Assembly: GCA_029953675.1 (NCBI GenBank)
Contig: JAMWBK010000004.1
Location: 620,001-684,000, forward strand
Source of the DNA: Rhodosorus marinus CCMP1338
Taxonomy: Eukaryota; Plantae; Rhodophyta
Length of the DNA: 64,000 nt
Direction of reading: 5' to 3'
The position numbers and the translations under genes were made by a program. A model generated the notes under the pieces. It was not told the DNA's origin. It saw only the letters and a list, made by a program, of their open reading frames with translations, and made no database searches. Shown here one piece after another: positions 2,202-64,000 of the stretch; positions within the stretch are counted from its first letter, which is position 1; every line of letters starts with the position of its first letter.

Positions 2202-2878
2202 GGATGTGAGAGCCGGATTGACGCTTGTGGCTACCACTTCCTGGGTTCCTGCGGACTGTTGAGAGGTCTCCGTACGAGGCGTCACACTCGCCTCAAGTAC
2301 ATCCTCAGCGAATTTTTGACTCGGATAGGGCATACGGTTGAGGTTGAGTCGGAACTGCCCAGATCAATCTCGGACTCTGCACCGCCCCGTTGTATAGCCG
2401 ATCTCCTCGTCTCCGACGCTACTGCCAGACGCTCAACATATGTGGACCTTGCGATTACCTGCCCCGTGGCCAGCGCCCACCTCACCGCAGCCGCCCGCCG
2501 CCGGGGGGCCGCGGCTTCAGCCCTTCGAAGAGTTAAGGAACGACGGTATGCTGAGAGCATGGCCAGTCTGCCTTGCGCTGAGGGTCGCTCTCACCGGTTC
2601 CAGCCATTCATTGTGGAAAGCTTTGGTCACGTGGATAAGTCGGGTTTAGAGTGGTTGCGGAAATGTTTTGCTGAGCATCCTACTGAATACTTGGCGCTCT
2701 TGAGGCGTTTAAGTGTCTCCCTTTGGCGATATTCCAGCCACATGCTTTCCGAGGCGCGCCATCGGCGCCTGGGGTTGCATGCTTCCCTCCCTAGTTATTA
2801 GTTCATCTTCACGCCTTGCGTAGCGCTTCAGGCTATGCTAGTAAAGTCCAGTCCAATAAAGCCAAGCCAGTATAAAGC
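2202..2878 (+). mobile_element. RLE LINE 3' fragment, family A, copy 1
   Basis: Encodes GCESRIDACGYHFLGSC (zinc knuckle, truncated), RTRRH, IADLLV..TYVDLAITCP..KERRY..FQPFIVESFG (PD-(D/E)xK-type nuclease); stop at 2799-2801; tail agtaaagtccagtccaataaagcc. Confidence 0.85.
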
Positions 2879-3705
2879 GCACGGGCAATGTCTCTCAAAT
2901 GAGGTTCTACCGATGAGCGACTATTGCTGGTTGAAAACTATTCCAACCGCGCCCGTTCACTACATGTGACCGTGGCAATTTTTGGCTACAACTCTCCCCC
3001 TGTTTGAGTGTCGTTTTTTCATCTCTCCGGCGGGATCGCCACATCGGCCGTCTTTCTGTCAGGGATGTGAGAGCCGGATTGACGCTTGTGGCTACCACTT
3101 CCTGGGTTCCTGCGGACTGTTGAGAGGTCTCCGTACGAGGCGTCACACTCGCCTCAAGTACATCCTCAGCGAAGTTTTGACTCGGATAGGGCATACGGTT
3201 GAGGTTGAGTCGGAACTGCCCAGATCAATCTCGGACCCTGCACCGCCCCGTTGTATAGCCGATCTCCTCGTCTCTGACGCTACTGCCAGACGCTCAACAT
3301 ATGTGGACCTTGCGATTACCTGCCCCGTGGCCAGCGCCCACCTCACCGCAGCCGCCCGCCGCCGGGGGGCCGCGGCTTCAGCCCTTCGAAGAGTTAAGGA
3401 ACGACGGTATGCTGAGAGCATGGCCAGTCTGCCTTGCGCTGAGGGTCGCTCTCACCGGTTCCAGCCATTCATTGTGGAAAGCTTTGGTCACGTGGATAAG
3501 TCGGGTTTAGAGTGGTTGCGGAAATGTTTTGCTGAGCATCCTACTGAATATTTGGCGCTCTTGAGGCGTTTAAGTGTCTCCCTTTGGCGATATTCCAGCG
3601 ACATGCTTTCCGAGGCGCGCCATCGGCGCCTGGGGTTGCATACTTCCCTCCCTAGTTATTAGTTCATCTTCACGCTTTGCGTAGCGCTTCAGGCTATGCT
3701 AGTAA
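2879..3705 (+). mobile_element. RLE LINE 3' fragment, family A, copy 2 (longer, with in-frame stop)
   Basis: Near-identical to copy 1 but extends 5': WLKTIPTAPVHYM*PWQFLA...CQGCESRIDACGYHFLGSC, giving a complete CCHC knuckle. Confidence 0.85.
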
Positions 3706-7971: not shown

Positions 7972-8688
7972 ATGAGGACTAGTGCACTAGCGTTTGCTGT
8001 AGTAGCGGCGATCGTCGTCGTCGCGCAGGCTTCTGATATTCATGGGCATCATGATAAATTCTATGAGACATGCGCAACTTTCACTGATATGTACAAGGAC
8101 GTATTTCTGGAGGGCAATAAGAACGAAGTCTGCTATTTCCTCGTCACGAAGAGGGGCTTCCCAGTGGCCAAGGTTTGCGCGAGTATGAAGAACATCTTCG
8201 ACAGGATTGACTACAAGAATCCGTTCAAGGGAAAGGAGAACTGCATCAGCTTCACTTTCCATGCCAAACCAGGGTTCCTCCTCAGCGGCGTGGCCGCCGG
8301 TGTCAGCAACAGTTTCAAGTCGGCAGCCAAGAACCCCTTCCAGTGCGCAGCGGACCTGGTATATCCACTTCCGGAGAAGACCATTTTCGTGTGCATGGAT
8401 GAGGTCTACGTCCCTCCAGGACCCCACTACGATGGTTGCTGCAACACAAACATCGTCCTCACACCGAAGGTGACCGTCGTTAAGACGAAGAGGTACGGCG
8501 CGCCGCTCGGCTACTACAGGAAACTCCGAGCGGTTATGGCAGTTCCCAAGCCAGGAAAAGATGACTGCAAGTACGTGGGTGGTGCCGTGAGCTGCAGAGT
8601 TCCACTCTTCTGCAAGTACAAGATCGAGCATGACCACCACGATGATAAGGGAAAGGACCACGGTAAGGGCAAAAACGGAAGGGACTGA
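7972..8688 (+). CDS. Secreted Cys-rich protein of unknown function, 238 aa
   Basis: ATG start, hydrophobic signal peptide (MRTSALAFAVVAAIVVVAQA), Cys pattern shared with the N-terminal domain of 31739-34261, His-rich patches near both ends, coding-like codon usage. Confidence 0.85.
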   Translation: MRTSALAFAVVAAIVVVAQASDIHGHHDKFYETCATFTDMYKDVFLEGNKNEVCYFLVTKRGFPVAKVCASMKNIFDRIDYKNPFKGKENCISFTFHAKPGFLLSGVAAGVSNSFKSAAKNPFQCAADLVYPLPEKTIFVCMDEVYVPPGPHYDGCCNTNIVLTPKVTVVKTKRYGAPLGYYRKLRAVMAVPKPGKDDCKYVGGAVSCRVPLFCKYKIEHDHHDDKGKDHGKGKNGRD

Positions 8689-9060: not shown

Positions 9061-9517
9061 AATGATGAACGCCGTGTAGCCGACCTGGTGATAACCTGTG
9101 ACGACAGCCGCCGTACCACATACGTTGATCTTGCTGTTCCCAACCCTCAAGCTAGTCGTTATCTCCCGGCTGCGGGGGAGCGCCGTGGATCTGCCGCCGC
9201 CAGCATGAGACGCCGCAAAGAGATCAAATACGCGGGGGCTTTGTCTTCCCCTGGTGTTCGTGCTTCGGCACTAGCACATCGCTTGGTACCCCTGATCATT
9301 GAGTGCTTTGGGTTCATGGACTCTGTTGGTTCTCGCTGGCTTCGGGAGTTGTTCCGCGAACGCCCTGACCGTCTTCAATCGTTGTTTACCCGCTTAAGTT
9401 TCCTGCTGTGGCGCATGAATGCCGCTTTGATGTTGGAGGCGCGAGTACTTCGCCGCGCTTAGTCTTTTTTTCCCCTCGGGGTTTTTTTTTTTTTCAGCCT
9501 CCGATTAAACCATTCAT
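9061..9517 (+). mobile_element. RLE LINE 3' fragment, family B, with 13-bp target-site duplication
   Basis: NDERRVADLVITCDDSRRTTYVDLAVPNP...KEIKY...LIIECFG; tcaatccccccaa occurs at 9048-9060 and 9518-9530. Confidence 0.88.
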
Positions 9518-9996: not shown

Positions 9997-10643
9997 GAAT
10001 GAATGAATGAATGGTTTAATCGGAGGCTGAAAAAAAAACCCCGAGGGGAAAAAAAGACTAAGCGCGGCGAAGTACTCGCGCCTCCAACATCAAAGCGGCA
10101 TTCATGCGCCACAGCAGGAAACTTAAGCGGGTAAACAACGATTGAAGACGGTCAGGGCGTTCGCGGAACAACTCCCGAAGCCAGCGAGAACCAACAGAGT
10201 CCATGAACCCAAAGCACTCAATGATCAGGGGTACCAAGCGATGTGCTAGTGCCGAAGCACGAACACCAGGGGAAGACAAAGCCCCCGCGTATTTGATCTC
10301 TTTGCGGCGTCTCATGCTGGCGGCGGCAGATCCACGGCGCTCCCCCGCAGCCGGGAGATAACGACTAGCTTGAGGGTTAGGAACAGCAAGATCAACGTAT
10401 GTGGTACGGCGGCTGTCGTCACAGGTGAAGCACGAATGCCTTGGGAAATACAAATCCCCTGCTTGTTTCAACTCTTTGCGACATCTCATACTGGCAGAGG
10501 CAAATCCACAGCGCTCTGACGCAGACGGCAAATAATGACTAACCTGGGGATTAGGAACAGCAAGATGAAGGTACGTCGTACGGCGGCTATCGTCACAGGT
10601 GACCACGAGGTCAGCCACTCGGCGTTCGTCCTTCTCGTAGTCC
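9997..10643 (-). mobile_element. RLE LINE family B: an internal fragment fused in frame to a 3' fragment
   Basis: ORF 10058-10645 contains TCDDSRRTTY twice; (ATTC)4 tail at 9997-10012. Confidence 0.85.
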
Positions 10644-24723: not shown

Positions 24724-27700
24724 TTATAAACCGGAAACGTTAACTTTGAAGGAGCTTATCGTCGATGCGACAGGGGCTCCCACGTAGAGGTAACCATCCT
24801 TGTAAACGATCGACTCTGGATCAAGGACTCCCTGTTCACCAGCTTCGAAGAGCTCGCTCTGAGGTATGTCTGTCTTCGTCGATGAGATCGACGCAAGGTA
24901 GATCGGGGAGTCCGGCATGGTGATGTCGAAAGCCATCAATGTGCTTGAGCGCTCATTTCCAACGAACAGAATGGTGCGTCCCTTGACGACGGATACATAG
25001 AGAGACTCTGGCTCTGGTCCCTTTGCGTCGGACCTGGAGTCAAACTCATCCTGCATGCTGTCCTCGTCCTCACCCTAGTGACAAGAGTGGTCAACATAGC
25101 TATCAGGTTTCCGCAGTTGAGTATTTTCGAGGGAGACCTACGTACCGCTTGCGCATTGAAGATATGCGGGAACTCCTTCTCGTGAATCTTCTCAATCCAG
25201 TCGCCGCTGTCGACAACGCAGGTTCCGTCAAGCGTATAGATCTGGAAGGCCCTCGCGCCGAAGTGGAACAGCGCCTCCTGGGTGTTCGTCTCCTTGTTGT
25301 ATCCATCCGGATAGGAAACCTCGAGTCGCCCAAGCTTCTTATCGTCCCTAATAAGGGCCTTCAGCTCCGGAGCGAGGTTCCTTCCCAAGTCGGACTCAAT
25401 ATCACCCGCTCTGATCTCGTCGTACTCCTCGCCCCAGGCATCTCCTTCGCAGGCCACCGCGATATACTGGACACCTCCGCTCTCGAACAACTGGATCGTA
25501 TCCGGCTGACACATGCCGTAGACTTTGGGGTACCTGCGGATGTTGATCTCTTCGTCGTCATCAGATGCATCAATGCCGTAGCCCTTGACGTATCTGGGCG
25601 TGAAGATCAACGGCTTAATCTCCGTGACCTGAACGATAGAAGGAACCAAAACACCAGTGAGTACTACTGGTGAACGCAGAACTAATCGTCAAGAGCTCAC
25701 CTTGGCTTCAGCAAGGTCGACGACCGCGAACGCGTTGTTCTCCTGGAGTCCAACAATGGCGTACTGCCCGTCCATGGTGTACGTGATGTACTCCGGCTCG
25801 AGAGCCATGGACGGCATACTAGGATTCTGCCAGAGTCTTACACCTTGTTTCCTGTTCAGCGTGTGGAATAGAAGGTCAACCACTAACTGAGGCAGAGAGA
25901 GCGAACGAGAAGGGTTGGATTCCTACTTTAACTCGGAACGAAGCTTCTTATCATCGAACGGATTGAAGCTGGCAACGTTGACGGTGTCAGTAAGCGCATT
26001 CCACACCAAGACGCCTCCGGGAACATCCGCTCCCTCTCCTTCGCACGCAATGGAGACATAACCGCAGTCTGGACTCCACTTGACAGCGTCTGGGAGGAAA
26101 CAGTTGCTTGGCTTGAACTTCCTGTACTGCTTCAAGTCCTCTAGCTTTCCATTCACGAACTTGGGCTTGAGGATCAATAGGAAGCCCGGTCCGCCAGTCT
26201 TATCCTCGACCGCGGCCGCAATGAATCCGCTGGTGCTGCCCATGTAGTTGCAGACGTCGACGGAATTGATCCCAGTGTCATCACCAGCAGAGAAGGAGAC
26301 GAGCGGCTTCTTCTTCAGAGGCTTCCTTCGGTAAGCATCGATCCGGCCATCGGCAGCGTTGGCTGAATAGAGAGTGTTGCTGTTATCGTCCAGGGCAATA
26401 ATCTCAACCTTCGCCTCGTCGAACTTCTTAGATAAAACGATCTGGTCCTTGAGCACGAACTTGAGACCACCCTCTGTCTTCTTCTTGGGAGGCTTGGGTG
26501 CTTGCGGGCGGGAGCACACCGTCGGTCCTCCGAGGTTGCGTCCCAGCTCAAAGATTGAGATCATGACCTCCGGGTTGTTCTCGAGACCAAAATCGTTGTC
26601 CTGTGCCGAGTAGAGGAACTTGTTGCCCTTGGTGACGAAGCCTTCCTGCTTGGCGCTGCCTTTAAAGTTATTGGTTCCGCCCATGGCGCCTTCATAGGTG
26701 TCCAGGACCTTGGTCTTCATCGCAGGCATCACGCCCAGGGCCTCGAGGCTCATCGTACCCGCTGATTCAAACTCAAGCTTGAGGTTATTGGCGTACTTTG
26801 TCTCAGAGAGATCGGTAGCCATCTTCCAGTTGATGTTAAACCACTTCACCTGCCCACTCGCACGCTCAAGGGCGATGAAGCTGTATTCGTCGTAGTACTC
26901 CGCAGCAGAGTACTTGAGATCTGCGGGTACTACCGTGTTCCTGAAGTAGGTGCTGACCGGACTGCCTTCAAAGGCAAACGTCTTCTTGAACCTGAGCTTG
27001 GCCGGCTCGTCCTTCTTACCGGTCAGCTTGATCTCGAAGACAACTGCGCGGATGACACGGTTCTGGTCGTACTCGGGGACATCACGGTCACCCATAGGGG
27101 ACTGAAGGATGGCGATAAGGTAGGAACCATCTTCGGAGACCACCAGGTTCTCAAACCCACGGTTCTTACGTCGGTTCTTGAAAACATCAGGGATTTCACC
27201 ATACACCTTCATGTCGGCCTTCTCTAGCATGCTGGCAATGCTCTTGGGGACGTATCTCGCGAAGACGGTTCCGTCTTTCTTCAGTAGGAGGATCGAAGGG
27301 GAGTACTCTTCGACAAGCGCCAACAGACCCCCGCTCTTTGGAATCTGGTGGATGTCCTCTGGATCGACACCGTTTGGATCGTACGGGAGCGGCCCACCCG
27401 CGCAGTTCGGACCATAGGGCGTATCATCTAACTCGGTATTGGATATACCCGACAGAGGAGATCCGCTGAGACTCTTCAGCATGATGTACTCCTTGACCTT
27501 GATGCCGTCTGGCCTGATCTTGAACTTGGCGATCGTAGGAGCAAACTTGGTGACGGGGAAACCTGGTTGGGAAAGACACCAGAATTGTGGTTTTCAGGTC
27601 TCAATCACTGTTCAGTGATGCTCTGTACGTAGCATTTTCGGGGTGATTCTCACCTTTCCCTGACTTTCCACAAGCCTCAGAGTACTTGACTGGGTCCAGC

Positions 27701-28158
27701 TCGCACAGGGACTCGCAATCTTGATTCGGTCCACGATCGGTGAGGCCGATCAGTAGCTTGTTCTTTAGCATAGACAGGCCCGATCCAAAAGCCGGGGTAA
27801 CCGCGCAGACCTGTCCTGCATCACGATCAGGGTCACAGGTTCCGTCGACTAGTTGGTCAACCAGAGCCAGATACTCCGGGTCATTCTTCAGATGCGGATT
27901 GAACTTGGCATACGGAATCTGTCATTGCCAGTTTTCAAGAACGTAGGGGGAGAAATCATCAGTCTTCCTGCCAAGAACGGTGGGTATCCGCAACCCGACC
28001 AGAATCCACCCCATCAGCGCGGGCTATCTACATTGTTGATCAGCCTGACTCACATCCGGAAAGTTATAGACTGACGTCACGGACGCCCTGCAGTTCGCAG
28101 TCGCACATCTCGCGATCGCGATCAGAGCCAACAAAGTGCACACTAGCAAAGCATTCAT
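24724..28158 (-). CDS. Secreted atypical alkaline phosphatase-like protein: phytase-like/esterase domain plus choice-of-anchor-I-type propeller; 6 exons, 996 aa
   Basis: Exons 28158-28054, 27918-27654, 27562-25927, 25851-25701, 25628-25146 and 25074-24724 total 2991 nt in frame. GT-AG introns are 135, 91, 75, 72 and 71 bp. Signal peptide MNALLVCTLLALIAIARCATA. Motifs include TDRGPN, RKNRGFENL, LQSP, CEGE, EPEYI, LQENNA, DASD, GMCQPD, EGD, FGARAF, DSGD, FDSRSDAKGPEPE and GNER. Confidence 0.88.
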
Positions 28159-31738: not shown

Positions 31739-34261
31739 CTAGCCGTAGTAGTACAAAGTTCGGTTTGTATCATAATAGTATGAAGAATCGTCGAGGAGGC
31801 ATTGGGTTGACACCGTATACGCCTGATCAACGTTGAGCACAAGCTTCGTTGCGGTGTTCCTCTCCCACTCATCCTCGGCATCTTGAGTCGTGCAGGAGGA
31901 ACACTGAATGCTTCCGGTTCTCCCTACTGAAGTTCCTTCCGCTGGAAGACCTTGTCCCCCTAGGTCTAGTTCGGAACCGAACCCTGGACCTTCAAAAGGA
32001 CCGCCGATGAAATTGCCCGGTGCTGCTCCTGGGAACCGTAGGATGACGCTGTCAATTCTTATCCCACGCCTGAGCAATATGAGCCCAATCGAGAACTTGG
32101 ACGTGTTGATGAAGTCCAGCAAGTCTGAATTGATGAATAGGAAGTTCGTGAATGATATGAAGGTCCCAGTTTCAACCTCCGCTGTCTCTACAAGCCCGAA
32201 CCGTCCGTGGAAAACGAGACTGAAGAACCGTAGACCCTGACCCTGAACGTCGAGGTATACGGCGACTCCGTACTCCTTCTTCGCCTGCGTATCTGAGATT
32301 CTAGGTTCGACAACGGCCTCCAGAAAAATATCTCCGGACAGTCGGCCAACTTCGTTGATCTTCACAAAGGTCGGGTCGCAGGGCCCGACGTCCTGGTTGA
32401 AGGGAACTGAACAGTTCATTGAGTCCGGGAAGGTCTCAAAGAATTGGTACGGATTGAGATCTAATTCTGTAGAAGGGCCATAGAAGTAGGTCTCCGTTCG
32501 TTTTGACGATGATGAACACAATCCGCAGCGGGTAGCTCCGACACGACAGAGGCCGACCGGCTCCGCGGACGACTGTCTCACCGAGCTGCATGCTTCGCAA
32601 TTTTCAAGTCGACTAGTATCCGCCCACGGTAGGGACATCCTCGTCGCAGGGCCGCTTATCGTATTCACTGGAGGTCCCACCGAGAGGCCAAGCATATCCT
32701 TCGCTGGACCGTCGACCGCGGTTTTCTCCCCTCCAATCGAGATGAAATCCACAACCTCCCCGAACCTGAGCAGAGCTACGGCACCAAAGAAAACCTGCGA
32801 GACGTCACCCTGAATCTGCATGACGTCCGGACTGAAGCTAAGGAACACGCCGTCGTCTAACTTTGCAGAATCCACCGTACCCCCATTAGTTTTGTTGTCG
32901 ACGCCCGAGAAGAACCTCACAGAGCTCGGGTTACCAGGCATGGGTGCATACAACGCGACGGAGAATGCCGCGGCAGCCTGTCCTTCATCCTCGCCCGGAG
33001 GGAGCGCGACCTCTACGAACGGGTTGAACGAGCCGCGTTTCTGTCCCAGCTCGTTGATCCTGGAGAAGCTAGTCCCTCCGCAGGTCCCTATCGCGTCGAC
33101 GTGTACCAAGCATTCCACCTCCGCCTTGAAGAACTGTAAAACGTTCAAGGAGAGCTCTGTGCGCGCCATTGGAACCCACTCGGTCCTCGATGTCTCGTTC
33201 AGAGACTTGCACAGTCCACACTGGGTGCTGGAGATGCGCCCAAAGGTTTCTGGAATGACGGGTTCGGCGATGATCGACACGTTTAGGAACGCCGCCGTTA
33301 AGCCCATGGCGGGCCCGTCAAGTGCCACTGGCGAACCCATGAGACTCACAAAGTCGGTCACAACTCCCGAGAGTGCTTGCAGAACAGCAATTGCATAGCC
33401 GAACTGAAACCGGTTTCCGTTAAGTTGTACATCCTTGAAAGCCATGAGCGAGAACTCTCCTCCAGGAGCGGTCTCGAACTCCACATCCGAGCTATTCGTC
33501 GAGAAGGCGAACCTGGCCTGATCTCTGGCCCCGTTGAGGCTGTAGACGGCGAGCTTGAAGGTGTCCGCTTCGCTACCACTGGGGAGTCCAGGAGCAACGA
33601 CAGCCTCGACGTAGATCTTATCGTCTACGGGCCGGGCGCTGAGCTCGTTCAGCTTGGCGTAGGACATTGAGCATTGTCTCGGTGGTTGTGGGGGATCCTT
33701 GTCCTTGCATTGAAGCTGCACCGGGCACGCCTGGAAGTCCACATCTGGGATTGGTACAGTCACCGAGCACTTGGTGTCGACTATTTTCGTCCTCACAACC
33801 TTCCCGTTGCGGTTGGCCATGTTCGCATCGGCTACCATCACCATGGTATTACCACAGCAGGGCCCATCGGCAGGGATGTCCTTGAGACAGATCTGTAGCT
33901 TCTTCCTCGTCTTAGGAGATCCAAAGCCACGCACCATGGTGAACCTCTCGTTGCCCCCGGGGATCAGATCCGCCCTCTGAAAGATCCCTCCGCGTATCCT
34001 CTTCAGGGTGAACATGCCGAACGTTCTGAACTCCAGCCTGAAACAGTTGGTGAAATTCCCAGGGCTGGGCTCCCTCTCCACCATACGCAGCCACACCTTC
34101 CCTCTGAGCCGACCCTTCTCATCCTGAAGCATGTACCGATTCAAGCCAACGAACAGTGTCTCATTCTCTCCCAGCCTCTCTGCACATGTATTCGCACAGG
34201 CCGTTCCAACAAGGACGATCAGGCCACACAAGATGAAGCCAAACTGTACCTTCATCGTCAT
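31739..34261 (-). CDS. Secreted 840-aa protein: Cys-patterned N-terminal domain plus three lamin-tail-like repeats
   Basis: Intronless ORF with ATG and signal peptide. Three repeats start at LNEL, INEL and INEV; each has E-x-V-x-x-P, a VxxY strand, GP and a terminal LN(V/P)xQ. Confidence 0.9.
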   Translation of the reverse strand: MTMKVQFGFILCGLIVLVGTACANTCAERLGENETLFVGLNRYMLQDEKGRLRGKVWLRMVEREPSPGNFTNCFRLEFRTFGMFTLKRIRGGIFQRADLIPGGNERFTMVRGFGSPKTRKKLQICLKDIPADGPCCGNTMVMVADANMANRNGKVVRTKIVDTKCSVTVPIPDVDFQACPVQLQCKDKDPPQPPRQCSMSYAKLNELSARPVDDKIYVEAVVAPGLPSGSEADTFKLAVYSLNGARDQARFAFSTNSSDVEFETAPGGEFSLMAFKDVQLNGNRFQFGYAIAVLQALSGVVTDFVSLMGSPVALDGPAMGLTAAFLNVSIIAEPVIPETFGRISSTQCGLCKSLNETSRTEWVPMARTELSLNVLQFFKAEVECLVHVDAIGTCGGTSFSRINELGQKRGSFNPFVEVALPPGEDEGQAAAAFSVALYAPMPGNPSSVRFFSGVDNKTNGGTVDSAKLDDGVFLSFSPDVMQIQGDVSQVFFGAVALLRFGEVVDFISIGGEKTAVDGPAKDMLGLSVGPPVNTISGPATRMSLPWADTSRLENCEACSSVRQSSAEPVGLCRVGATRCGLCSSSSKRTETYFYGPSTELDLNPYQFFETFPDSMNCSVPFNQDVGPCDPTFVKINEVGRLSGDIFLEAVVEPRISDTQAKKEYGVAVYLDVQGQGLRFFSLVFHGRFGLVETAEVETGTFISFTNFLFINSDLLDFINTSKFSIGLILLRRGIRIDSVILRFPGAAPGNFIGGPFEGPGFGSELDLGGQGLPAEGTSVGRTGSIQCSSCTTQDAEDEWERNTATKLVLNVDQAYTVSTQCLLDDSSYYYDTNRTLYYYG

Positions 34262-37459: not shown

Positions 37460-37632
37460 TCACCGCTACGCAAAACGTGGTAACTGAGAAATCGGGAGAC
37501 AAACATGCAAACCCAAGCGCCGATGGAGCGCCTCCGCAAGCATGCTGCTAGAATATCGCCACAGGGGTAAGAGTTCCAAGTACTCCATAGGATGCTCAGC
37601 AAAACATTTCCGCAACCACTCCAAACCCCCTA
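37460..37632 (-). mobile_element. RLE LINE 3' fragment, family A (degenerate)
   Basis: GLEWLRKCFAEHPMEYLELL...WRYSSSMLAEALHRRLGLH. Confidence 0.75.
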
Positions 37633-37659
37633 CCTTGGTCCGGTTCTGGAGCTTGGGCA

Positions 37660-38250
37660 GCAGTCTGAGCTCCAAATTCTTCACGGTGATTCCTTACCCT
37701 CGACTAGCCTTAACGAAATTCGATTTGCGTGTAGGACTGCGTTTATGTCTGCGGCTCCCCTACCCGCTTTGGCCTGTCGAGCGGAATGCCCCGCGTCTTC
37801 TCTGTGGTTGCATTGTGGAATCCGGCGACGTTGGTGCCGGCCTCCTAGCGTCCTGTGCGGCAGTGGGAGGTGCCCGCACGCGTCGCCATACGCGTATACA
37901 CGGATTTTATTTCGATATCTACAATCGCAGGCGCTTGATGCTGATGATGAGACTCCTGTTGTCCACGGAGTTGGTGGTCATTGACCTGGCTGCCCGCAAG
38001 GGAGTGAGTATCTTGACTTGTCTATTCCTTGTTGCCCCAGGCGCGCGATATGTTCCCACGTCTGCAAAAATTCATGCTACCGCCGTTGATTCAATGCGAC
38101 GGCTGAAGGAATCTCAGTACGCTGAGGTGAAGACTCATCCAACCTTTCAGGATCTGGCGCTGTCACATCGGTTTGTACCGCTGATCTTCGAGTGCTTTGG
38201 TTTCTTAGACAGTGGTGCTTCTCGCTGGCTTCTTCGTGTCTTTCGCCATC
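37660..38250 (+). mobile_element. RLE LINE 3' fragment, family C (degenerate)
   Basis: LRVGLRLCLRL...LLASCAAVGGARTRRHTRI...DSMRRLKESQY...RFVPLIFECFGFLDSGASRWL. Confidence 0.75.
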
Positions 38251-38779
38251 CCCACGTCCGCGGCGTTCAAATGCTGCTCCTTTGTTGGACGCGCGTAATC
38301 AGCGTCTCCCGTTCCGCCCCTCAGCGTAGATAGGCACTGAATAAATATTTGTTGCTGTTGCTGGCGTTGTTAGCTCAAGCGAGCCATTGAACTCAAACAT
38401 AAGGTACAAGGATTTAGTTTCCTCGTAGGAGATTTTGAGATGATCCAATATCCAATCTGCTATTCGCAAGTTGAAATGCTGTACCGGTCACGCGTTGCCC
38501 GTCATAAGTCATAGCCTCCAGATGATGGAAACGTGCGAATATTCAGCTGAAACATCAGGTTTCGCGTAAGACACATCTACATTAAACAAATTCAATTCAA
38601 CTTAGACATGCGGTAGAAAGAAGCACCGACATCGTCCGTGTCCATAGGCGTATCGTCGTCATTCGACATCTTCAGGAATCGATCAAGTCTTACCCAACCG
38701 ACGGGAGAAGTGCAAGAAAGAAAAGACGTAAGATATTAAGTCTCACGCACGTACCCGAGGCCATAGCATATTTAGTCTG

Positions 38780-38945
38780 CTGCTTTATGGCACTTTTGCG
38801 GCGTTTAAGTGTCTCTCTGTGGCGATATTCGAGCAGCATGCTTGCCGAGGCGCGCCATCGGCGCCTGGGTTTGCACACTTCCCTACCTAGTTCTTAGTTC
38901 CTTTTCACGGTTTGCGTAGCGCTTTAGGCTGTGCTAATAAAGCCA
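38780..38945 (+). mobile_element. RLE LINE 3' fragment, family A (short)
   Basis: Matches 2690-2860, including the aataaagcc tail. Confidence 0.75.
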
Positions 38946-39158
38946 GCTTTATGGCCGCTAACACTCTTGCTTTATTTCAAAGGTCCCCGGTCCAAACCAG
39001 AGACTTTTGGTGTTCACGTGTTGAGTCTCATCGCTCAACTTGTCTCCAAAACATGAGTTTCATCGGAGTATCAGTCTCTTTGGGGTTACACGTTTGATGA
39101 AGCCATCGTGAGTCCTCAGTGTAGTAATCGACCTATAAGTCGTTGGTGGTCTTGCCAA

Positions 39159-40491: not shown

Positions 40492-40847
40492 TAAGCTGTG
40501 TGGAAATGGTTTATCGCAGACCCTGGGTGGGCAGTGGGACGGACACCTAATTTTGGAAACAAAGGCCCCGAAAAGAAGACGAGCGCGGACAAAGTAGAAA
40601 CCACTCTGAGAGAGAGATGTGATTGTCCAATGGTGGCAGAAGCACGGATCGAGTCCATGACCTTAGGTTTCCACGTTGTCACTCGCTGAAGACTGAGTTT
40701 GGACACCACTGCAATGTTTGAGGAAGTTTATCAGGGATCAGTAGACTCCTGTTGTTCGTCAGCAGACTACCATTTTTGGAAGTACAACGATGCCAGCGAA
40801 CTCTCAAGGTATATGGCTCGGGTGAATGAGCATACGTCTTCTTTGCT

Positions 40848-40854
40848 TATATAG
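40848..40854 (+). promoter_or_regulatory. TATA-like box upstream of the peptide-repeat precursor
   Basis: TATATAG ~110 bp upstream of ATG 40964. Confidence 0.4.
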
Positions 40855-40963
40855 GGCAAGCGGAGCCTGGCTCAGGCTTTTTCGAACCCAAGTGTTCAAG
40901 GAAAGGGCGTCTTTTTTTTTGGTGCGAGTAGGGAGAGACGATAGACAGAGAGAGAGGCGAGGG

Positions 40964-41419
40964 ATGGGGAAGCTCCTGGTGTTGGCACTCGGAGTGCTGC
41001 TATGCATGGCGACTCTCGGGATCCCGGTTGATGATGACTATGCGGCGAGATCACAGGACCTGCCGGGTCAGATCCAAAAACGAAGCGGAGGCAAACCCCG
41101 TGGTCCCCCCGGCGGCCGTATATTTGCGACTCCGGATCAGATCGCAAAACGTAGCGGAGGCAAACCCCCCCGTGCCCCCGGCCGTATATTTGCGACCGCG
41201 GATCAGATTGCAAAACGTAGCGGAGGCAAACCCCCCCGTGCCCCCGGCCGTATATTTGCGACCGCGGATCAGATTGCAAAACGTAGCGGAGGCAAACCCC
41301 CCCGTGCCCCCGGCCGTATATTTGCGACCGCGGATCAGATTGCAAAACGTAGCGGAGGCAAACCCCCCCGGGGCCCCGGCGGCCGTATATTGGCGACTCC
41401 TAGTAAAAAAATTGATTGA
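40964..41419 (+). CDS. Secreted KR-delimited peptide-repeat precursor (KEP/prohormone-like), 151 aa
   Basis: MGKLLVLALGVLLCMATLG signal peptide, acidic pro-segment IPVDDDY..., then five units, each preceded by KR: SGGKPRGPPGGRIFATPDQIA, three copies of SGGKPPRAPGRIFATADQIA, and SGGKPPRGPGGRILATPSKKID. Confidence 0.85.
   Translation: MGKLLVLALGVLLCMATLGIPVDDDYAARSQDLPGQIQKRSGGKPRGPPGGRIFATPDQIAKRSGGKPPRAPGRIFATADQIAKRSGGKPPRAPGRIFATADQIAKRSGGKPPRAPGRIFATADQIAKRSGGKPPRGPGGRILATPSKKID
41078..41400 (+). repeat. Coding tandem repeat, 66-bp unit (69 bp in the first unit)
   Basis: aaacgtagcggaggcaaacccccccgtgcccccggccgtatatttgcgaccgcggatcagattgca is repeated; every length change is a multiple of 3. 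Confidence 0.95.
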
Positions 41420-41904
41420 GATTCCTGTAACTCGGGCCACGACTCCTATGTAGTATGTTCTCGATTCTCGCGGAAGTCGTTGAGATATTCTCTTCCAGAT
41501 TTTGGTTAAAAGAGACCCCGTCCTAAATAAAAGGATTGACTTGATTTATCACCACGAACCCGATCTAGTATTCTCGCCGAGCGGTCGGTCGTTGATGCTG
41601 CTGGATTTTCGTAGACTGAGGCCGCATGGACAGGGGTTTGCGGTTGTTTACATCGCCTTGAGATTGCTTGCGTTGCTCGCGGCAGGTAGCTGTCGAAAAG
41701 GACTGCAGGGTTGCGAAAGAGACAGAATCCAAACCAATGGGAAGGCGAAACTTAAGCCTGATGCCTAAACCGCTTCCGACCAGGGAATTGGATCCATGAA
41801 CATTCGGACACCTAACACGACCGCGAGTCGCAGTTTGTTCTGAATGTCCTGATGCTTTTAGGCATCAACTGACAAGGTCAACCGAACCTTTCGCCCCTCC
41901 GATC

Positions 41905-42670
41905 GATCTCCATTCCTAAGGTGGGTCTTGGGCATGCCCCAATCGCTTTCCGCCACTCACACTCACAGATTTCGAAGTGCGCACTTCTCTGCGCTTATAA
42001 CTCGGCTTGCATCAGCCGCCCTGGCCTTCCGAGATGTGTTCGCCGTGCCCTCTATGCTCTCAGAACGAAGACACCGTGGATTTTGGCGCCCACCTGCTCG
42101 CCAGCTGCCCCGCTGTGAAAGGCGCCCGAACCTGCCCACATACGCGGATCTTGAACCTGTTATACCGCGAGCTTTGGCCTGTAGTACGGCAAGCCGGTCT
42201 TGAAATTGAACGTGAGAAGCCTCTGCCTATCGCAGACTACCAAAAATGATGAACGCAGAGTGGCTGACCTCGTGTCACCTGTGACGGTAGCCGCCGTACG
42301 ACGTACGTTGATCTTGCTGTTATTAATCCTCAGGCTAGTCGTTATCTGCGTGCTGCGGAGGGTGCCGTGGATTTGCCGCTGCCAGTATGAGACGTCGCAA
42401 AGAATTGAAATATGCTTGGTTTTGTCTTCCCCAGGATTCGTGCTTCGGCTCCAGCTCATCGCCTGGTACCTCTGGTCATTGAGTGCTTTGATTTTGCGGA
42501 TTCCGTTGGTTCTCGTTGCTTCGGGAATTGTTCCGCGAACGCCGTGACCGTCTGTCCTCGTTTATCCGTTTAAGTTTCTTGCTGTGGCGTCTGAACGCTG
42601 CTTCGATGTTGGAGGCGCGCGATCTTCGCCGCGCTTAGTATTTCTTTTCTCCCTCGGGGGTTTTTCTTCA
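41905..42670 (+). mobile_element. RLE LINE 3' fragment, family B, longest copy (degenerate)
   Basis: LTDFEVRTSLRL*LGL...CPLC...HLLASC...ARTCPHTRI, then a frameshift to NDERRVADL...; family B UTR. Confidence 0.8.
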
Positions 42671-43850: not shown

Positions 43851-43974
43851 TGGCCGTTTCTTTTTTTGCCTCACATAATTGCGACAATAAGATCCTAGAT
43901 TTTGCATCGAAAGTGGTTCTCACAGGAGCGTGCTTCATTTTTCTTCCATGTCTTTCTAACGGCAGCGACTGAGG

Positions 43975-44200
43975 GGGACTCTCATTACGCTGCCGCGATG
44001 ACACATCCAAACTTTCGGGACTCTACGCCGTCTCATCGGTTTGTACCCGCTGATCATCGAGTGCTTTGGTCTTTTTTAGACAGTGTTGCTTCTCGCTGGC
44101 TTCGTCGTGTTTTTCGCAATGCCGCTCCCCCTGCCCCGGGCCGTCTTGACAGCCTCCTCACGGAGCTGTCTCTGACTCTCTGGCGTGGAGCAGTTCAAAA
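43975..44200 (+). mobile_element. RLE LINE 3' fragment, family C
   Basis: DNA match to 38130-38250; FLDSVASRWLRRVF...GRLDSLLTELSLTLWR. Confidence 0.7.
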
Positions 44201-44702
44201 GCTGCTTGGTTGTTGGATGCATGTCAGGAGCGGAAAGGCTCCGGAGGGTAGATAAGCTCAGATAGTGAACGAAAAGTGGACGTATTGAGTAGTACATTAT
44301 ACTATCATGTACTATAATCAGGTATGGGTTTGCACGAGGAAAAGGGGAAACATTCGCCAGGGATATTGTGCATAGGAATTTTTTCGTCTGAACGAATTCC
44401 TCCAAAGGTGCTTTTTTTGGTCGTGTCGGTTTGAGGAGGACAAGGGCTTCTAAGTGTTAAAAGAGTTGGTGGGAAGATGAAAGGATGGGAGAAGAGGGAG
44501 AGAGGGGACGATGACTGAGATCTAATGCTAAGGAAAAGGAAGGAAAAGAGAAAGGATGAAAAGCGAGTATCTTTGTTTGGTTTTTGGTTTTGTGAAGCGC
44601 AGGATTTGATATCTGTAAAACAAACAGAGGCTCGAGTATTTTTGGGAGGGAAGGGAGGTTGTGCTTCTAGTCTTGGCGTTTCGTTGACGGAAAAAGAAGT
44701 AG

Positions 44703-62951: not shown

Positions 62952-64000
62952 TTAACATCCAGAATTCGTGTATTCGTCTGAGCACCGGCTAATGGTCTGC
63001 CCGCTCGTGTTCTTGGGTAGGTTGCGACCGCAGAATGGGAAACCACCGATCAGGTTGTTGATACAGTTGTCCTGGCAGTTGAGCTTGGCTCCATATTGGC
63101 ATACAACGAGCTGGGTAAGCCGGCCGCCTGTATCGCAGGACACATCAGCACACCCAAGAAGTTCAGTGCCGCTCCATACCATGGCGGTGTAATGGCCAAC
63201 GACGCCGCCGTTAATCCTGGTACATGAGTTACTGGAGGGACCGAACCGGTAGTCATCGACCTCCTCAGCAAAAGCTGTTATGGACCGGCGCTCAATGTCA
63301 TCGGACGAGGAATATCCGGATTGATAGTAGAGGTTCTCTCCGAGGTATCCGTACTGGGTCGACCTTCGGAAGGCACTGGATGAGTGCTGCAAGACACACC
63401 CCCTGTTCTTCAACTCGTTCGCCCAGTTCTGTGCGCTCTGTGCGATCTCTGCGTCCCATATGGCAGGAGGGACTTTGACTTCATTTCGTAGCTTGTTGTG
63501 CTCAACGACCCACTCATTGCCGCCACCTCCACCTCCACCTCCACCTCCGCTGCACTTGGGAACCAGACAGACCTTGGCCTTGGAACCTACAGAAGCCTGG
63601 ACTCCGACGGCGACATCGCTCAACCCGTTCATGTACTGCACTCTGTTAACCAGATCGTTGTCGAGAACTTCAATCCTGATGCAAAAGTTGGGGGAAGGCA
63701 TCTTCACTGCCACGCCGTCAGCCCTTCCCCACTGGGTCCACTTGATGTTCAACGTGGTTCCGTCTGGGCTCCGTGTATATGAATCTCTTGGGGAACTGGG
63801 ATCGTCTTCGACTTCAACGCTTGCGCTCGGAGGTAGGTCACGGATCTCCATGCGGAGAGCTCCCTTCGTAATGCCGGCCTTCCTTTTGTTCACGATTACC
63901 AGGCTAGCCGTATTGCTCCTAGTGTCGACGTGAATCACTACTCGCGCCCTTCCCACTTTGATAAGCGGCTTCTGGGAAGTTTCCGCCTTCCGGTTGTATC
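62952..64000 (-). CDS. CAP/SCP (PR-1-like) domain protein with an extra N-terminal domain and poly-Gly linker; 5' end off the window
   Basis: HNKLR, WDAEIAQSAQNWA, LQHS, GENL, GHYTAMVW, LGCA, VVCQY. The frame stays open from 63956 to base 64000. Confidence 0.88.
   Translation of the reverse strand, partial: YNRKAETSQKPLIKVGRARVVIHVDTRSNTASLVIVNKRKAGITKGALRMEIRDLPPSASVEVEDDPSSPRDSYTRSPDGTTLNIKWTQWGRADGVAVKMPSPNFCIRIEVLDNDLVNRVQYMNGLSDVAVGVQASVGSKAKVCLVPKCSGGGGGGGGGGNEWVVEHNKLRNEVKVPPAIWDAEIAQSAQNWANELKNRGCVLQHSSSAFRRSTQYGYLGENLYYQSGYSSSDDIERRSITAFAEEVDDYRFGPSSNSCTRINGGVVGHYTAMVWSGTELLGCADVSCDTGGRLTQLVVCQYGAKLNCQDNCINNLIGGFPFCGRNLPKNTSGQTISRCSDEYTNSGC

Follow-up and report, generated by a model that had tools for sequence, protein, structure and literature searches.

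A 151-codon open reading frame (ORF) in Rhodosorus marinus, a unicellular red alga, combines a signal-like N-terminus with an acidic segment and with five closely related cationic units, each of which directly follows a Lys-Arg (KR) pair. The frame runs from ATG to stop in a single exon on the forward strand (40964-41419) of a 64,000-nucleotide stretch of DNA, hereafter the window, in which all positions are given. We tentatively propose, as a sizeable possibility, that it encodes a young, lineage-restricted multi-copy secretory precursor of this species that resembles the Kex2-processed repeat proteins (KEPs) of fungi. One and the same frame unites a signal-like N-terminus with gene-like codon usage and a bias of substitutions towards third codon positions, a combination that exceeds chance, and on sequence evidence the candidate is fairly likely to be a real expressed gene.

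The sequence-only reading that preceded this analysis had guessed at a probable alga, and rightly so. A glycosyltransferase neighbouring the candidate is encoded residue-for-residue on contig JAMWBK010000004.1 of assembly GCA_029953675.1, the nuclear genome of R. marinus (class Stylonematophyceae), which comprises 31 Mb and for which BRAKER, trained with RNA-seq, gave 8392 gene models (PMC10250338). The contig is thus that of a red alga, and a fungal or animal origin is excluded.

The ORF listing and its translation give the product as MGKLLVLALGVLLCMATLGIPVDDDYAARSQDLPGQIQ-KR-SGGKPRGPPGGRIFATPDQIA-KR-(SGGKPPRAPGRIFATADQIA-KR)x3-SGGKPPRGPGGRILATPSKKID*, which can be divided into the parts MGKLLVLALGVLLCMATLG / IPVDDDYAARSQDLPGQIQ / KR-SGGKPRGPPGGRIFATPDQIA / 3x KR-SGGKPPRAPGRIFATADQIA / KR-SGGKPPRGPGGRILATPS-KK-ID (Table 1). 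Translation and charge count bear out the architecture described by the sequence-only reading, i.e., the signal-like N-terminus, the acidic segment and five KR-preceded cationic units of 20-22 amino acids, and the mid-unit Gly-Arg that it pointed out is kept in all five units. After residue 19, the secreted form would consist of 132 residues with a net charge of +19, 14% Pro and 15% Gly. A KK pair lies between the last unit and the stop codon. The resulting C-terminus KKID (41405-41416, forward strand) matches the KKXX di-lysine pattern, a match that is probably meaningless because the protein has no membrane segment, and the pair may instead be a sixth dibasic site.

Table 1. Sequence features of the candidate precursor locus, in window coordinates.
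Feature	Position	Strand	Remark
TATA-like box TATATAGG	40848..40855	+	116 nt 5' of the candidate's ATG
Candidate CDS, 151 codons + stop	40964..41419	+	without public annotation; ATG context GGGATGG
Putative signal peptide, residues 1-19 (MGK / LLVLALGVLLCMATL / G)	40964..41020	+	predicted cut after TLG or CMA
Acidic pro-segment IPVDDDYAARSQDLPGQIQ, 19 aa, net -3	41021..41077	+	a truncated repeat unit makes up the last 7 codons
Unit 1, KR-SGGKPRGPPGGRIFATPDQIA	41078..41146	+	69 nt
Units 2-4, KR-SGGKPPRAPGRIFATADQIA	41147..41344	+	three identical 66-nt copies
Unit 5 and tail, KR-SGGKPPRGPGGRILATPS-KK-ID	41345..41416	+	stop at 41417-41419
AATAAA, possible polyadenylation signal	41526..41531	+	107 nt 3' of the stop

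In a single-sequence AlphaFold model no compact fold was predicted (pTM 0.13, mean pLDDT 57); helices were limited to residues 3-17 and a short helix at each ...DQIAKR. The lack of a compact fold implies that the KR sites would be accessible. A folded repeat domain is unsupported at this pTM of 0.13, a single-sequence model being weak evidence. A non-coding RNA at the locus was ruled out, as neither an Rfam nor a tRNA match was found there.

Evidence for coding comes from the part of the frame that precedes the repeats and from the repeats themselves. The 38 non-repeat N-terminal codons, which span the signal peptide and pro-segment, score +12.6 bits (+0.33 bit per codon) under a codon model for which seven window genes served as the training set; these genes themselves score 0.20-0.48 bit per codon, and the same 38 codons score negatively in all five other frames. 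Outside genes, a score that high was reached by just 0.66% of the 38-codon windows without a stop and by 1.8% of those among them that start with ATG. Codon usage of the repeat units is neutral. Among the three distinct unit types, 7 of the 9 substitutions fall in the third codon position (binomial P 0.008; 0.025 when any phase is allowed), and pN/pS between diverged units is 0.10-0.40; these coding statistics are based on nine substitutions and 38 codons, and units 2-4, being identical in DNA, carry no information on selection.

At the N-terminus, a basic n-region precedes a hydrophobic core of 15 uncharged residues, and positions -3/-1 are occupied by small residues. A crude rule for the n-, h- and c-regions of a signal peptide was passed by 6 of the 265 Met-started frames of at least 60 amino acids in the window, namely four from three evident secretory or membrane genes, one that is apparently spurious, and the candidate. 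Upstream, the TATA box that had been noticed from the sequence was found where Table 1 places it. TATAWA occurs 0.32 times per kb per strand, which gives a chance of about 10% for one within 300 nt, and the neighbouring gene for an 840-amino-acid protein has GCTTATAAAA at -109. The leader from the expected start site to the candidate's ATG, i.e., from about 40880 to 40963, contains no ATG. An in-frame ATG at 40826, which would start a 197-codon version, lies upstream of the TATA box.

The units form a single array at 41077-41397 with a period of 66 nt, 4.8 copies and 93% matches (Tandem Repeats Finder), the copy number resting on a polished Nanopore assembly. Unit lengths are 69, 66, 66, 66 and 69+ nt, and each change in length is a multiple of three, so that the earlier statement that such changes keep the frame stands. 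Units 2-4 are identical in DNA, and units 1 and 5 differ by substitutions and 3-nt length changes; the identity implies a recent expansion or conversion. The repeat is open in 4 of its 6 frames, and openness by itself therefore means little.

KR occurs once per unit, at the unit boundary, and nowhere else in the candidate protein. All five KR sites derive from a single repeat feature by copying and do not count as five independent events. At the DNA level, even the context of the first site (DLPGQIQKR) goes back to the unit end ATPDQIAKR, of which it is a shortened and diverged copy. When units of the same composition were shuffled, 27% contained KR and 70% contained some dibasic pair. The most conserved block of the array is I-x-K-R-S-G-G-K-P, within which KRSGGKP does not vary between units, even though the Arg codon changes synonymously between CGA and CGT. 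Ile occupies P4 at all five KR sites (QIQKR once, QIAKR four times). Yeast Kex2 prefers an aliphatic residue at P4 together with Lys-Arg at P2-P1, and the suitability of an aliphatic P4 for this enzyme was reportedly described by Rockwell & Fuller in 1998.

In the public annotation, which is based on BRAKER and guided by RNA-seq, no gene is called between 34262 and 44702, a stretch of 10.4 kb around the candidate that contains fragments of a dispersed transposon-like family. An exact product look-up found neither the 151- nor the 197-amino-acid form on record. No relative of the candidate was detected in a word-indexed search of 5.8 billion clusters, in a metagenome scan or in a viral contig scan, and a full HMMER scan of 1.84 billion representative proteins returned seven matches, all of them unrelated tandem-repeat proteins aligned repeat-to-repeat. 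Pfam gave only sub-threshold noise (HHH_RecD2, Imm31). Within the window there is no other copy of the ORF or of its N-terminus that could represent a paralogue. The possibility that the candidate is part of a transposon was rejected, as no second copy is present in the window and dispersed repeats occur only in its flanks.

For the window genes tested, the protein collection contained the proteins of the NCBI annotation and at least one Rhodosorus transcriptome peptide from MMETSP0011, and no peptide resembling the candidate was present in it. This absence is mildly informative since the 840-amino-acid neighbour does have a relative there from MMETSP0011 (85% identity); repeat-rich short transcripts assemble poorly, and the MMETSP strain is clearly diverged. 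That neighbour (31739-34261, reverse strand) is a secreted orphan without a Pfam domain, whose sole relative is the MMETSP0011 peptide, and at this level of identity the sequenced strain and the "R. marinus" of MMETSP would seem to be separated by substantial divergence. In the literature searched, no dibasic multi-copy precursor of this kind is described in red algae, in agreement with what the sequence-only reading had stated, such an absence not being proof of novelty; nor did that literature contain a statement on kexin or furin in red algae.

The neighbourhood of the candidate is rich in genes of the secretory pathway, including the 840-amino-acid protein, a phytase-like gene (24724-28158), a glycosyltransferase array and an ORF with a CAP/PR-1 domain. 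Pfam matches among the called genes between 21739 and 55635 are limited to GT32, Phytase-like and choice_anch_I. The array consists of tandem GT32-type glycosyltransferase genes (PF04488, with DXD motif) on the forward strand between 44700 and 62200, in which a 5.585-kb unit recurs three times (93-100% identity), each time with two paralogue types (295 and 332 amino acids); a more diverged copy of 310 amino acids stands at the start of the array, and a strong positive GC skew extends over the whole of it. The CAP/PR-1 ORF (62952-63956, reverse strand; PF00188, E 3e-17) has a poly-Gly run before the domain and likely has further upstream exons, as it starts with GTG. At 7972-8688 on the forward strand, a 238-amino-acid ORF combines a clear signal peptide with gene-like codon usage and with a C-terminus rich in His, Lys and Asp; it has no Pfam match, its exact product is absent from the protein collection, and it may represent a further secretory gene that is unannotated or modelled differently.

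Several other elements of the window are repetitive. A dispersed ORF/repeat family without Pfam match is represented at 1965-2801, 2982-3662, 37542-38333 and 43902-44255, with DNA fragments of the same family at 38146-38946 and 42275-42667, and copies thus lie on both sides of the candidate (37.5-38.9 kb and 42.3-44.3 kb). The copies share the pattern ...RTRRHTR... / SHRF.P...E.FG..D, with 27% identity (E 3e-12) between distant ones, and they are probably an uncharacterised mobile element of red algae. Two of them, at 1965-2801 and 2982-3662, enclose a full-length gene for the U4 spliceosomal snRNA (2871-3006, forward strand; Rfam RF00015, 81 bits, E 1.6e-16) in a region spanned by an 861-nt direct duplication. 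A 397-nt inverted repeat (9094-9490 / 10030-10426), the arms of which are 100% complementary and 539 nt apart, has related copies at 14.1, 16.4 and 42.3-42.7 kb and is probably a piece of the dispersed family or of another mobile element.

From the observed ORF, its layout and its signatures of coding constraint, we infer transcription, secretion, cleavage and function along the following lines. [quoted passage not shown] The predicted products are an acidic pro-fragment plus five linear peptides, closely related and 20-22 residues long: three copies of SGGKPPRAPGRIFATADQIA (neutral monoisotopic mass 2009.081), one SGGKPRGPPGGRIFATPDQIA (2078.102) and one SGGKPPRGPGGRILATPS(KKID) (2188.244 if the tail is retained). 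Each would combine a flexible cationic half rich in Pro and Gly with a short amphipathic half. The array itself would have grown by tandem duplication of the 66-bp unit. The likely role of the peptides would be extracellular, either as a cell-cell signal or by acting on or binding to the anionic sulfated matrix or associated bacteria.

This processed precursor has to be weighed against a product that is secreted and left intact, and against the absence of any function. Red algal matrices are rich in sulfated galactans, and a real gene might encode a disordered polycation of 132 residues that is never cut and binds the anionic sulfated sheath or the cell surface, which we judge unlikely. Such a polycation would share all of the coding and secretion evidence with the processed precursor, is consistent with the net charge of +19 and the absence of a predicted fold, and leaves the KR pairs in need of no special explanation, given their frequency in shuffled units (27%). 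Basic repeat proteins that interact with the extracellular matrix are moreover known in algae, for example the silaffin family, but the silaffin precursor too is processed into unit peptides (PMC4557024). Exposed KR pairs in disordered secretory proteins are normally cut where a eukaryote has a dibasic protease in the Golgi, the invariant block coincides exactly with the KR junction (I-x-K-R-S-G-G-K-P), and a further dibasic pair ends the last unit, all of which argues for cleavage. The other alternative, which we consider somewhat unlikely, is that the locus is non-functional: a 66-bp minisatellite in transposon-rich intergenic DNA would by chance be in frame with an ATG and a hydrophobic stretch, and would be untranscribed or at most a transient proto-gene. 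It would account for the missing annotation despite RNA-seq-guided prediction and for an orphan status in every collection searched, including the one with at least one transcriptome peptide of Rhodosorus, and it is consistent with the four open frames, the neutral codon usage of the repeat, the three identical units, which point to a very recent expansion, and the transposon-like fragments on either side (37.5-38.9 and 42.3-44.3 kb). Selection bias also works in its favour, as the ORF was picked for being striking, and the crude signal-peptide rule also lets through about one frame of the window that seems spurious. However, third-position bias (P 0.008-0.025) and a pN/pS of 0.1-0.4 are unexpected for non-coding repeats, the N-terminal codon usage lies in the top 0.66% of windows outside genes, and the in-frame indels, the TATA box, the ATG-free leader and the AATAAA likewise speak for a gene, while masking or poor assembly of tandem repeats could explain its absence from annotation and short-read transcriptomes.

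A variant of the processed precursor put forward by the sequence-only reading, in which an extra cut after the mid-unit Arg and amidation by PAM would yield SGGKPPRAP-NH2 and its relatives together with nonapeptides of the IFATADQIA type, has turned out to be disfavoured and is very improbable. The Gly-Arg on which it builds is indeed kept in every unit, but neither of the amidation motifs G-(K/R)(K/R) and (K/R)-X-G-(K/R) is present at the candidate's KR sites, every one of which is preceded by Ala or Gln, so that no Gly-dibasic site exists. Gly precedes only a single Arg with Ile next to it, and Ile at P1' disfavours monobasic cleavage, for which it is said to be unfavourable under Devi's rules; the upstream basic residues, in addition, are not consistently at P4, P6 or P8 across the units. 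Red algae, to our knowledge, have no cilia. PAM and amidated signalling peptides do occur in the green alga Chlamydomonas (PMC6313938, PMC6919629), but unicells without cilia, among them the red alga Cyanidioschyzon merolae, reportedly lack PAM (PMC6529398).

If the processed precursor is real, R. marinus would secrete linear cationic peptides of ~2 kDa from a KR-delimited precursor that evolved de novo, with a layout that became convergent through minisatellite expansion, and these would form the first dibasic-processed signal or defence system described in Rhodophyta; taken together, we regard this broader scenario as rather doubtful. It would mean that the arrangement of signal peptide, acidic pro-segment and KR repeats can arise convergently outside fungi, animals and green algae, and would exemplify how a multi-copy precursor is born when a 66-bp unit expands in frame downstream of a signal peptide. 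Almost nothing has been described in red algae of extracellular peptide signals or of peptides used in defence, and an ORF that is expressed and cut would give concrete access to the subject: its peptides, whose masses are predicted exactly, are open to chemical synthesis, and R. marinus is a unicell that can be cultured and has a nearly complete genome sequence. The candidate also illustrates how standard annotation can miss short repeat-rich secretory genes. Should it not be expressed, it would be a cautionary case of a tandem repeat that multiplies one KR into a seemingly designed layout.

Among known systems with a comparable organization, the apidaecin-type precursors of insects carry many short cationic Pro-containing peptides per precursor, separated by processing sites. 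Pro-rich antimicrobial peptides are generally recognized by about 25% or more Pro, PRP-type motifs and a high net charge. The candidate has no sequence relation to the apidaecin type, its main unit contains Pro at 3 of 20 positions and no PRP motif, and each released peptide would carry only +2; with 14% Pro in the secreted form and a net charge of +2 per 20-mer, the comparison with Pro-rich antimicrobial peptides made by the sequence-only reading is weak.

The resemblance to fungal KEPs is one of layout. KEPs are mined in fungi by an ER signal peptide and tandem repeats separated by Kex2 sites (KR/RR), and the class, which includes alpha-factor, Ece1/candidalysin, Rep1 and ustiloxin-type precursors, is defined by this layout, not by homology (PMC7329392). 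Both features are found in the candidate, with a signal-like N-terminus according to the crude rule and five KR-preceded units, and its units are near-identical, as in the fungal proteins. The earlier designation as a KEP-like precursor therefore holds for the layout (PMC7329392), and the coding tests favour a real frame; as to the rest of that claim, the searches described above yielded no transcript, orthologue, paralogue or annotated gene. The candidate shares an aliphatic residue at P4 with alpha-factor, but it has no Ste13-type X-Ala spacer after KR, its host is a red alga instead of a fungus, and it shows no sequence relation to any KEP. Ustiloxin-type precursors of RiPPs have a core with Tyr and a DUF3328/UstYa neighbour, whereas the candidate units lack Tyr and no such neighbour is found among the called genes between 21739 and 55635.

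Dibasic-processed precursors of secreted peptides also function in a unicellular alga, Chlamydomonas (PMC6313938, PMC6919629). Its preproGATI (Cre03.g204500) and the multi-copy neuropeptide precursors of animals have a signal peptide and dibasic sites, as does the candidate; in these known systems the sites are recognised by subtilisin-like convertases, and in the unicellular alga the secreted products are used as signals. The products of these systems, however, need Gly-dibasic sites and amidation by PAM, and in Chlamydomonas also cilia, whereas a Gly-dibasic site is lacking in the candidate.

The closest algal parallel, which the sequence-only reading missed, is in our assessment the silaffin precursor Sil1p of the diatom Cylindrotheca fusiformis, with which the silacidin and cingulin precursors can be grouped as a related diatom comparison. 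Sil1p carries a signal peptide and an acidic N-domain ahead of a basic array, whose seven units are released by proteolysis with trimming of basic residues and loss of RRIL/RRNL (PMC4557024). The signal peptide, the acidic N-domain and the strongly basic array of repeats of ~20 residues are common to both proteins, and an R-I-L or R-I-F inside each unit of the candidate recalls the RXL motif of diatoms, although it lies in the middle of the unit and not at its end. Sequence similarity is lacking, as are the Ser/Lys KxxK clusters for phosphorylation and polyamine modification, and in place of the Ser/Lys-rich silaffin units the candidate has units that are rich in Pro, Gly and Arg with one Ser each. 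Cleavage occurs at RXL in diatoms, which are stramenopiles, versus the predicted KR in Rhodosorus, which makes no silica. If the plausible reading as a processed precursor is true, the candidate would be a lineage-restricted, dibasic-delimited multi-copy secretory precursor in a phylum for which none has been described.
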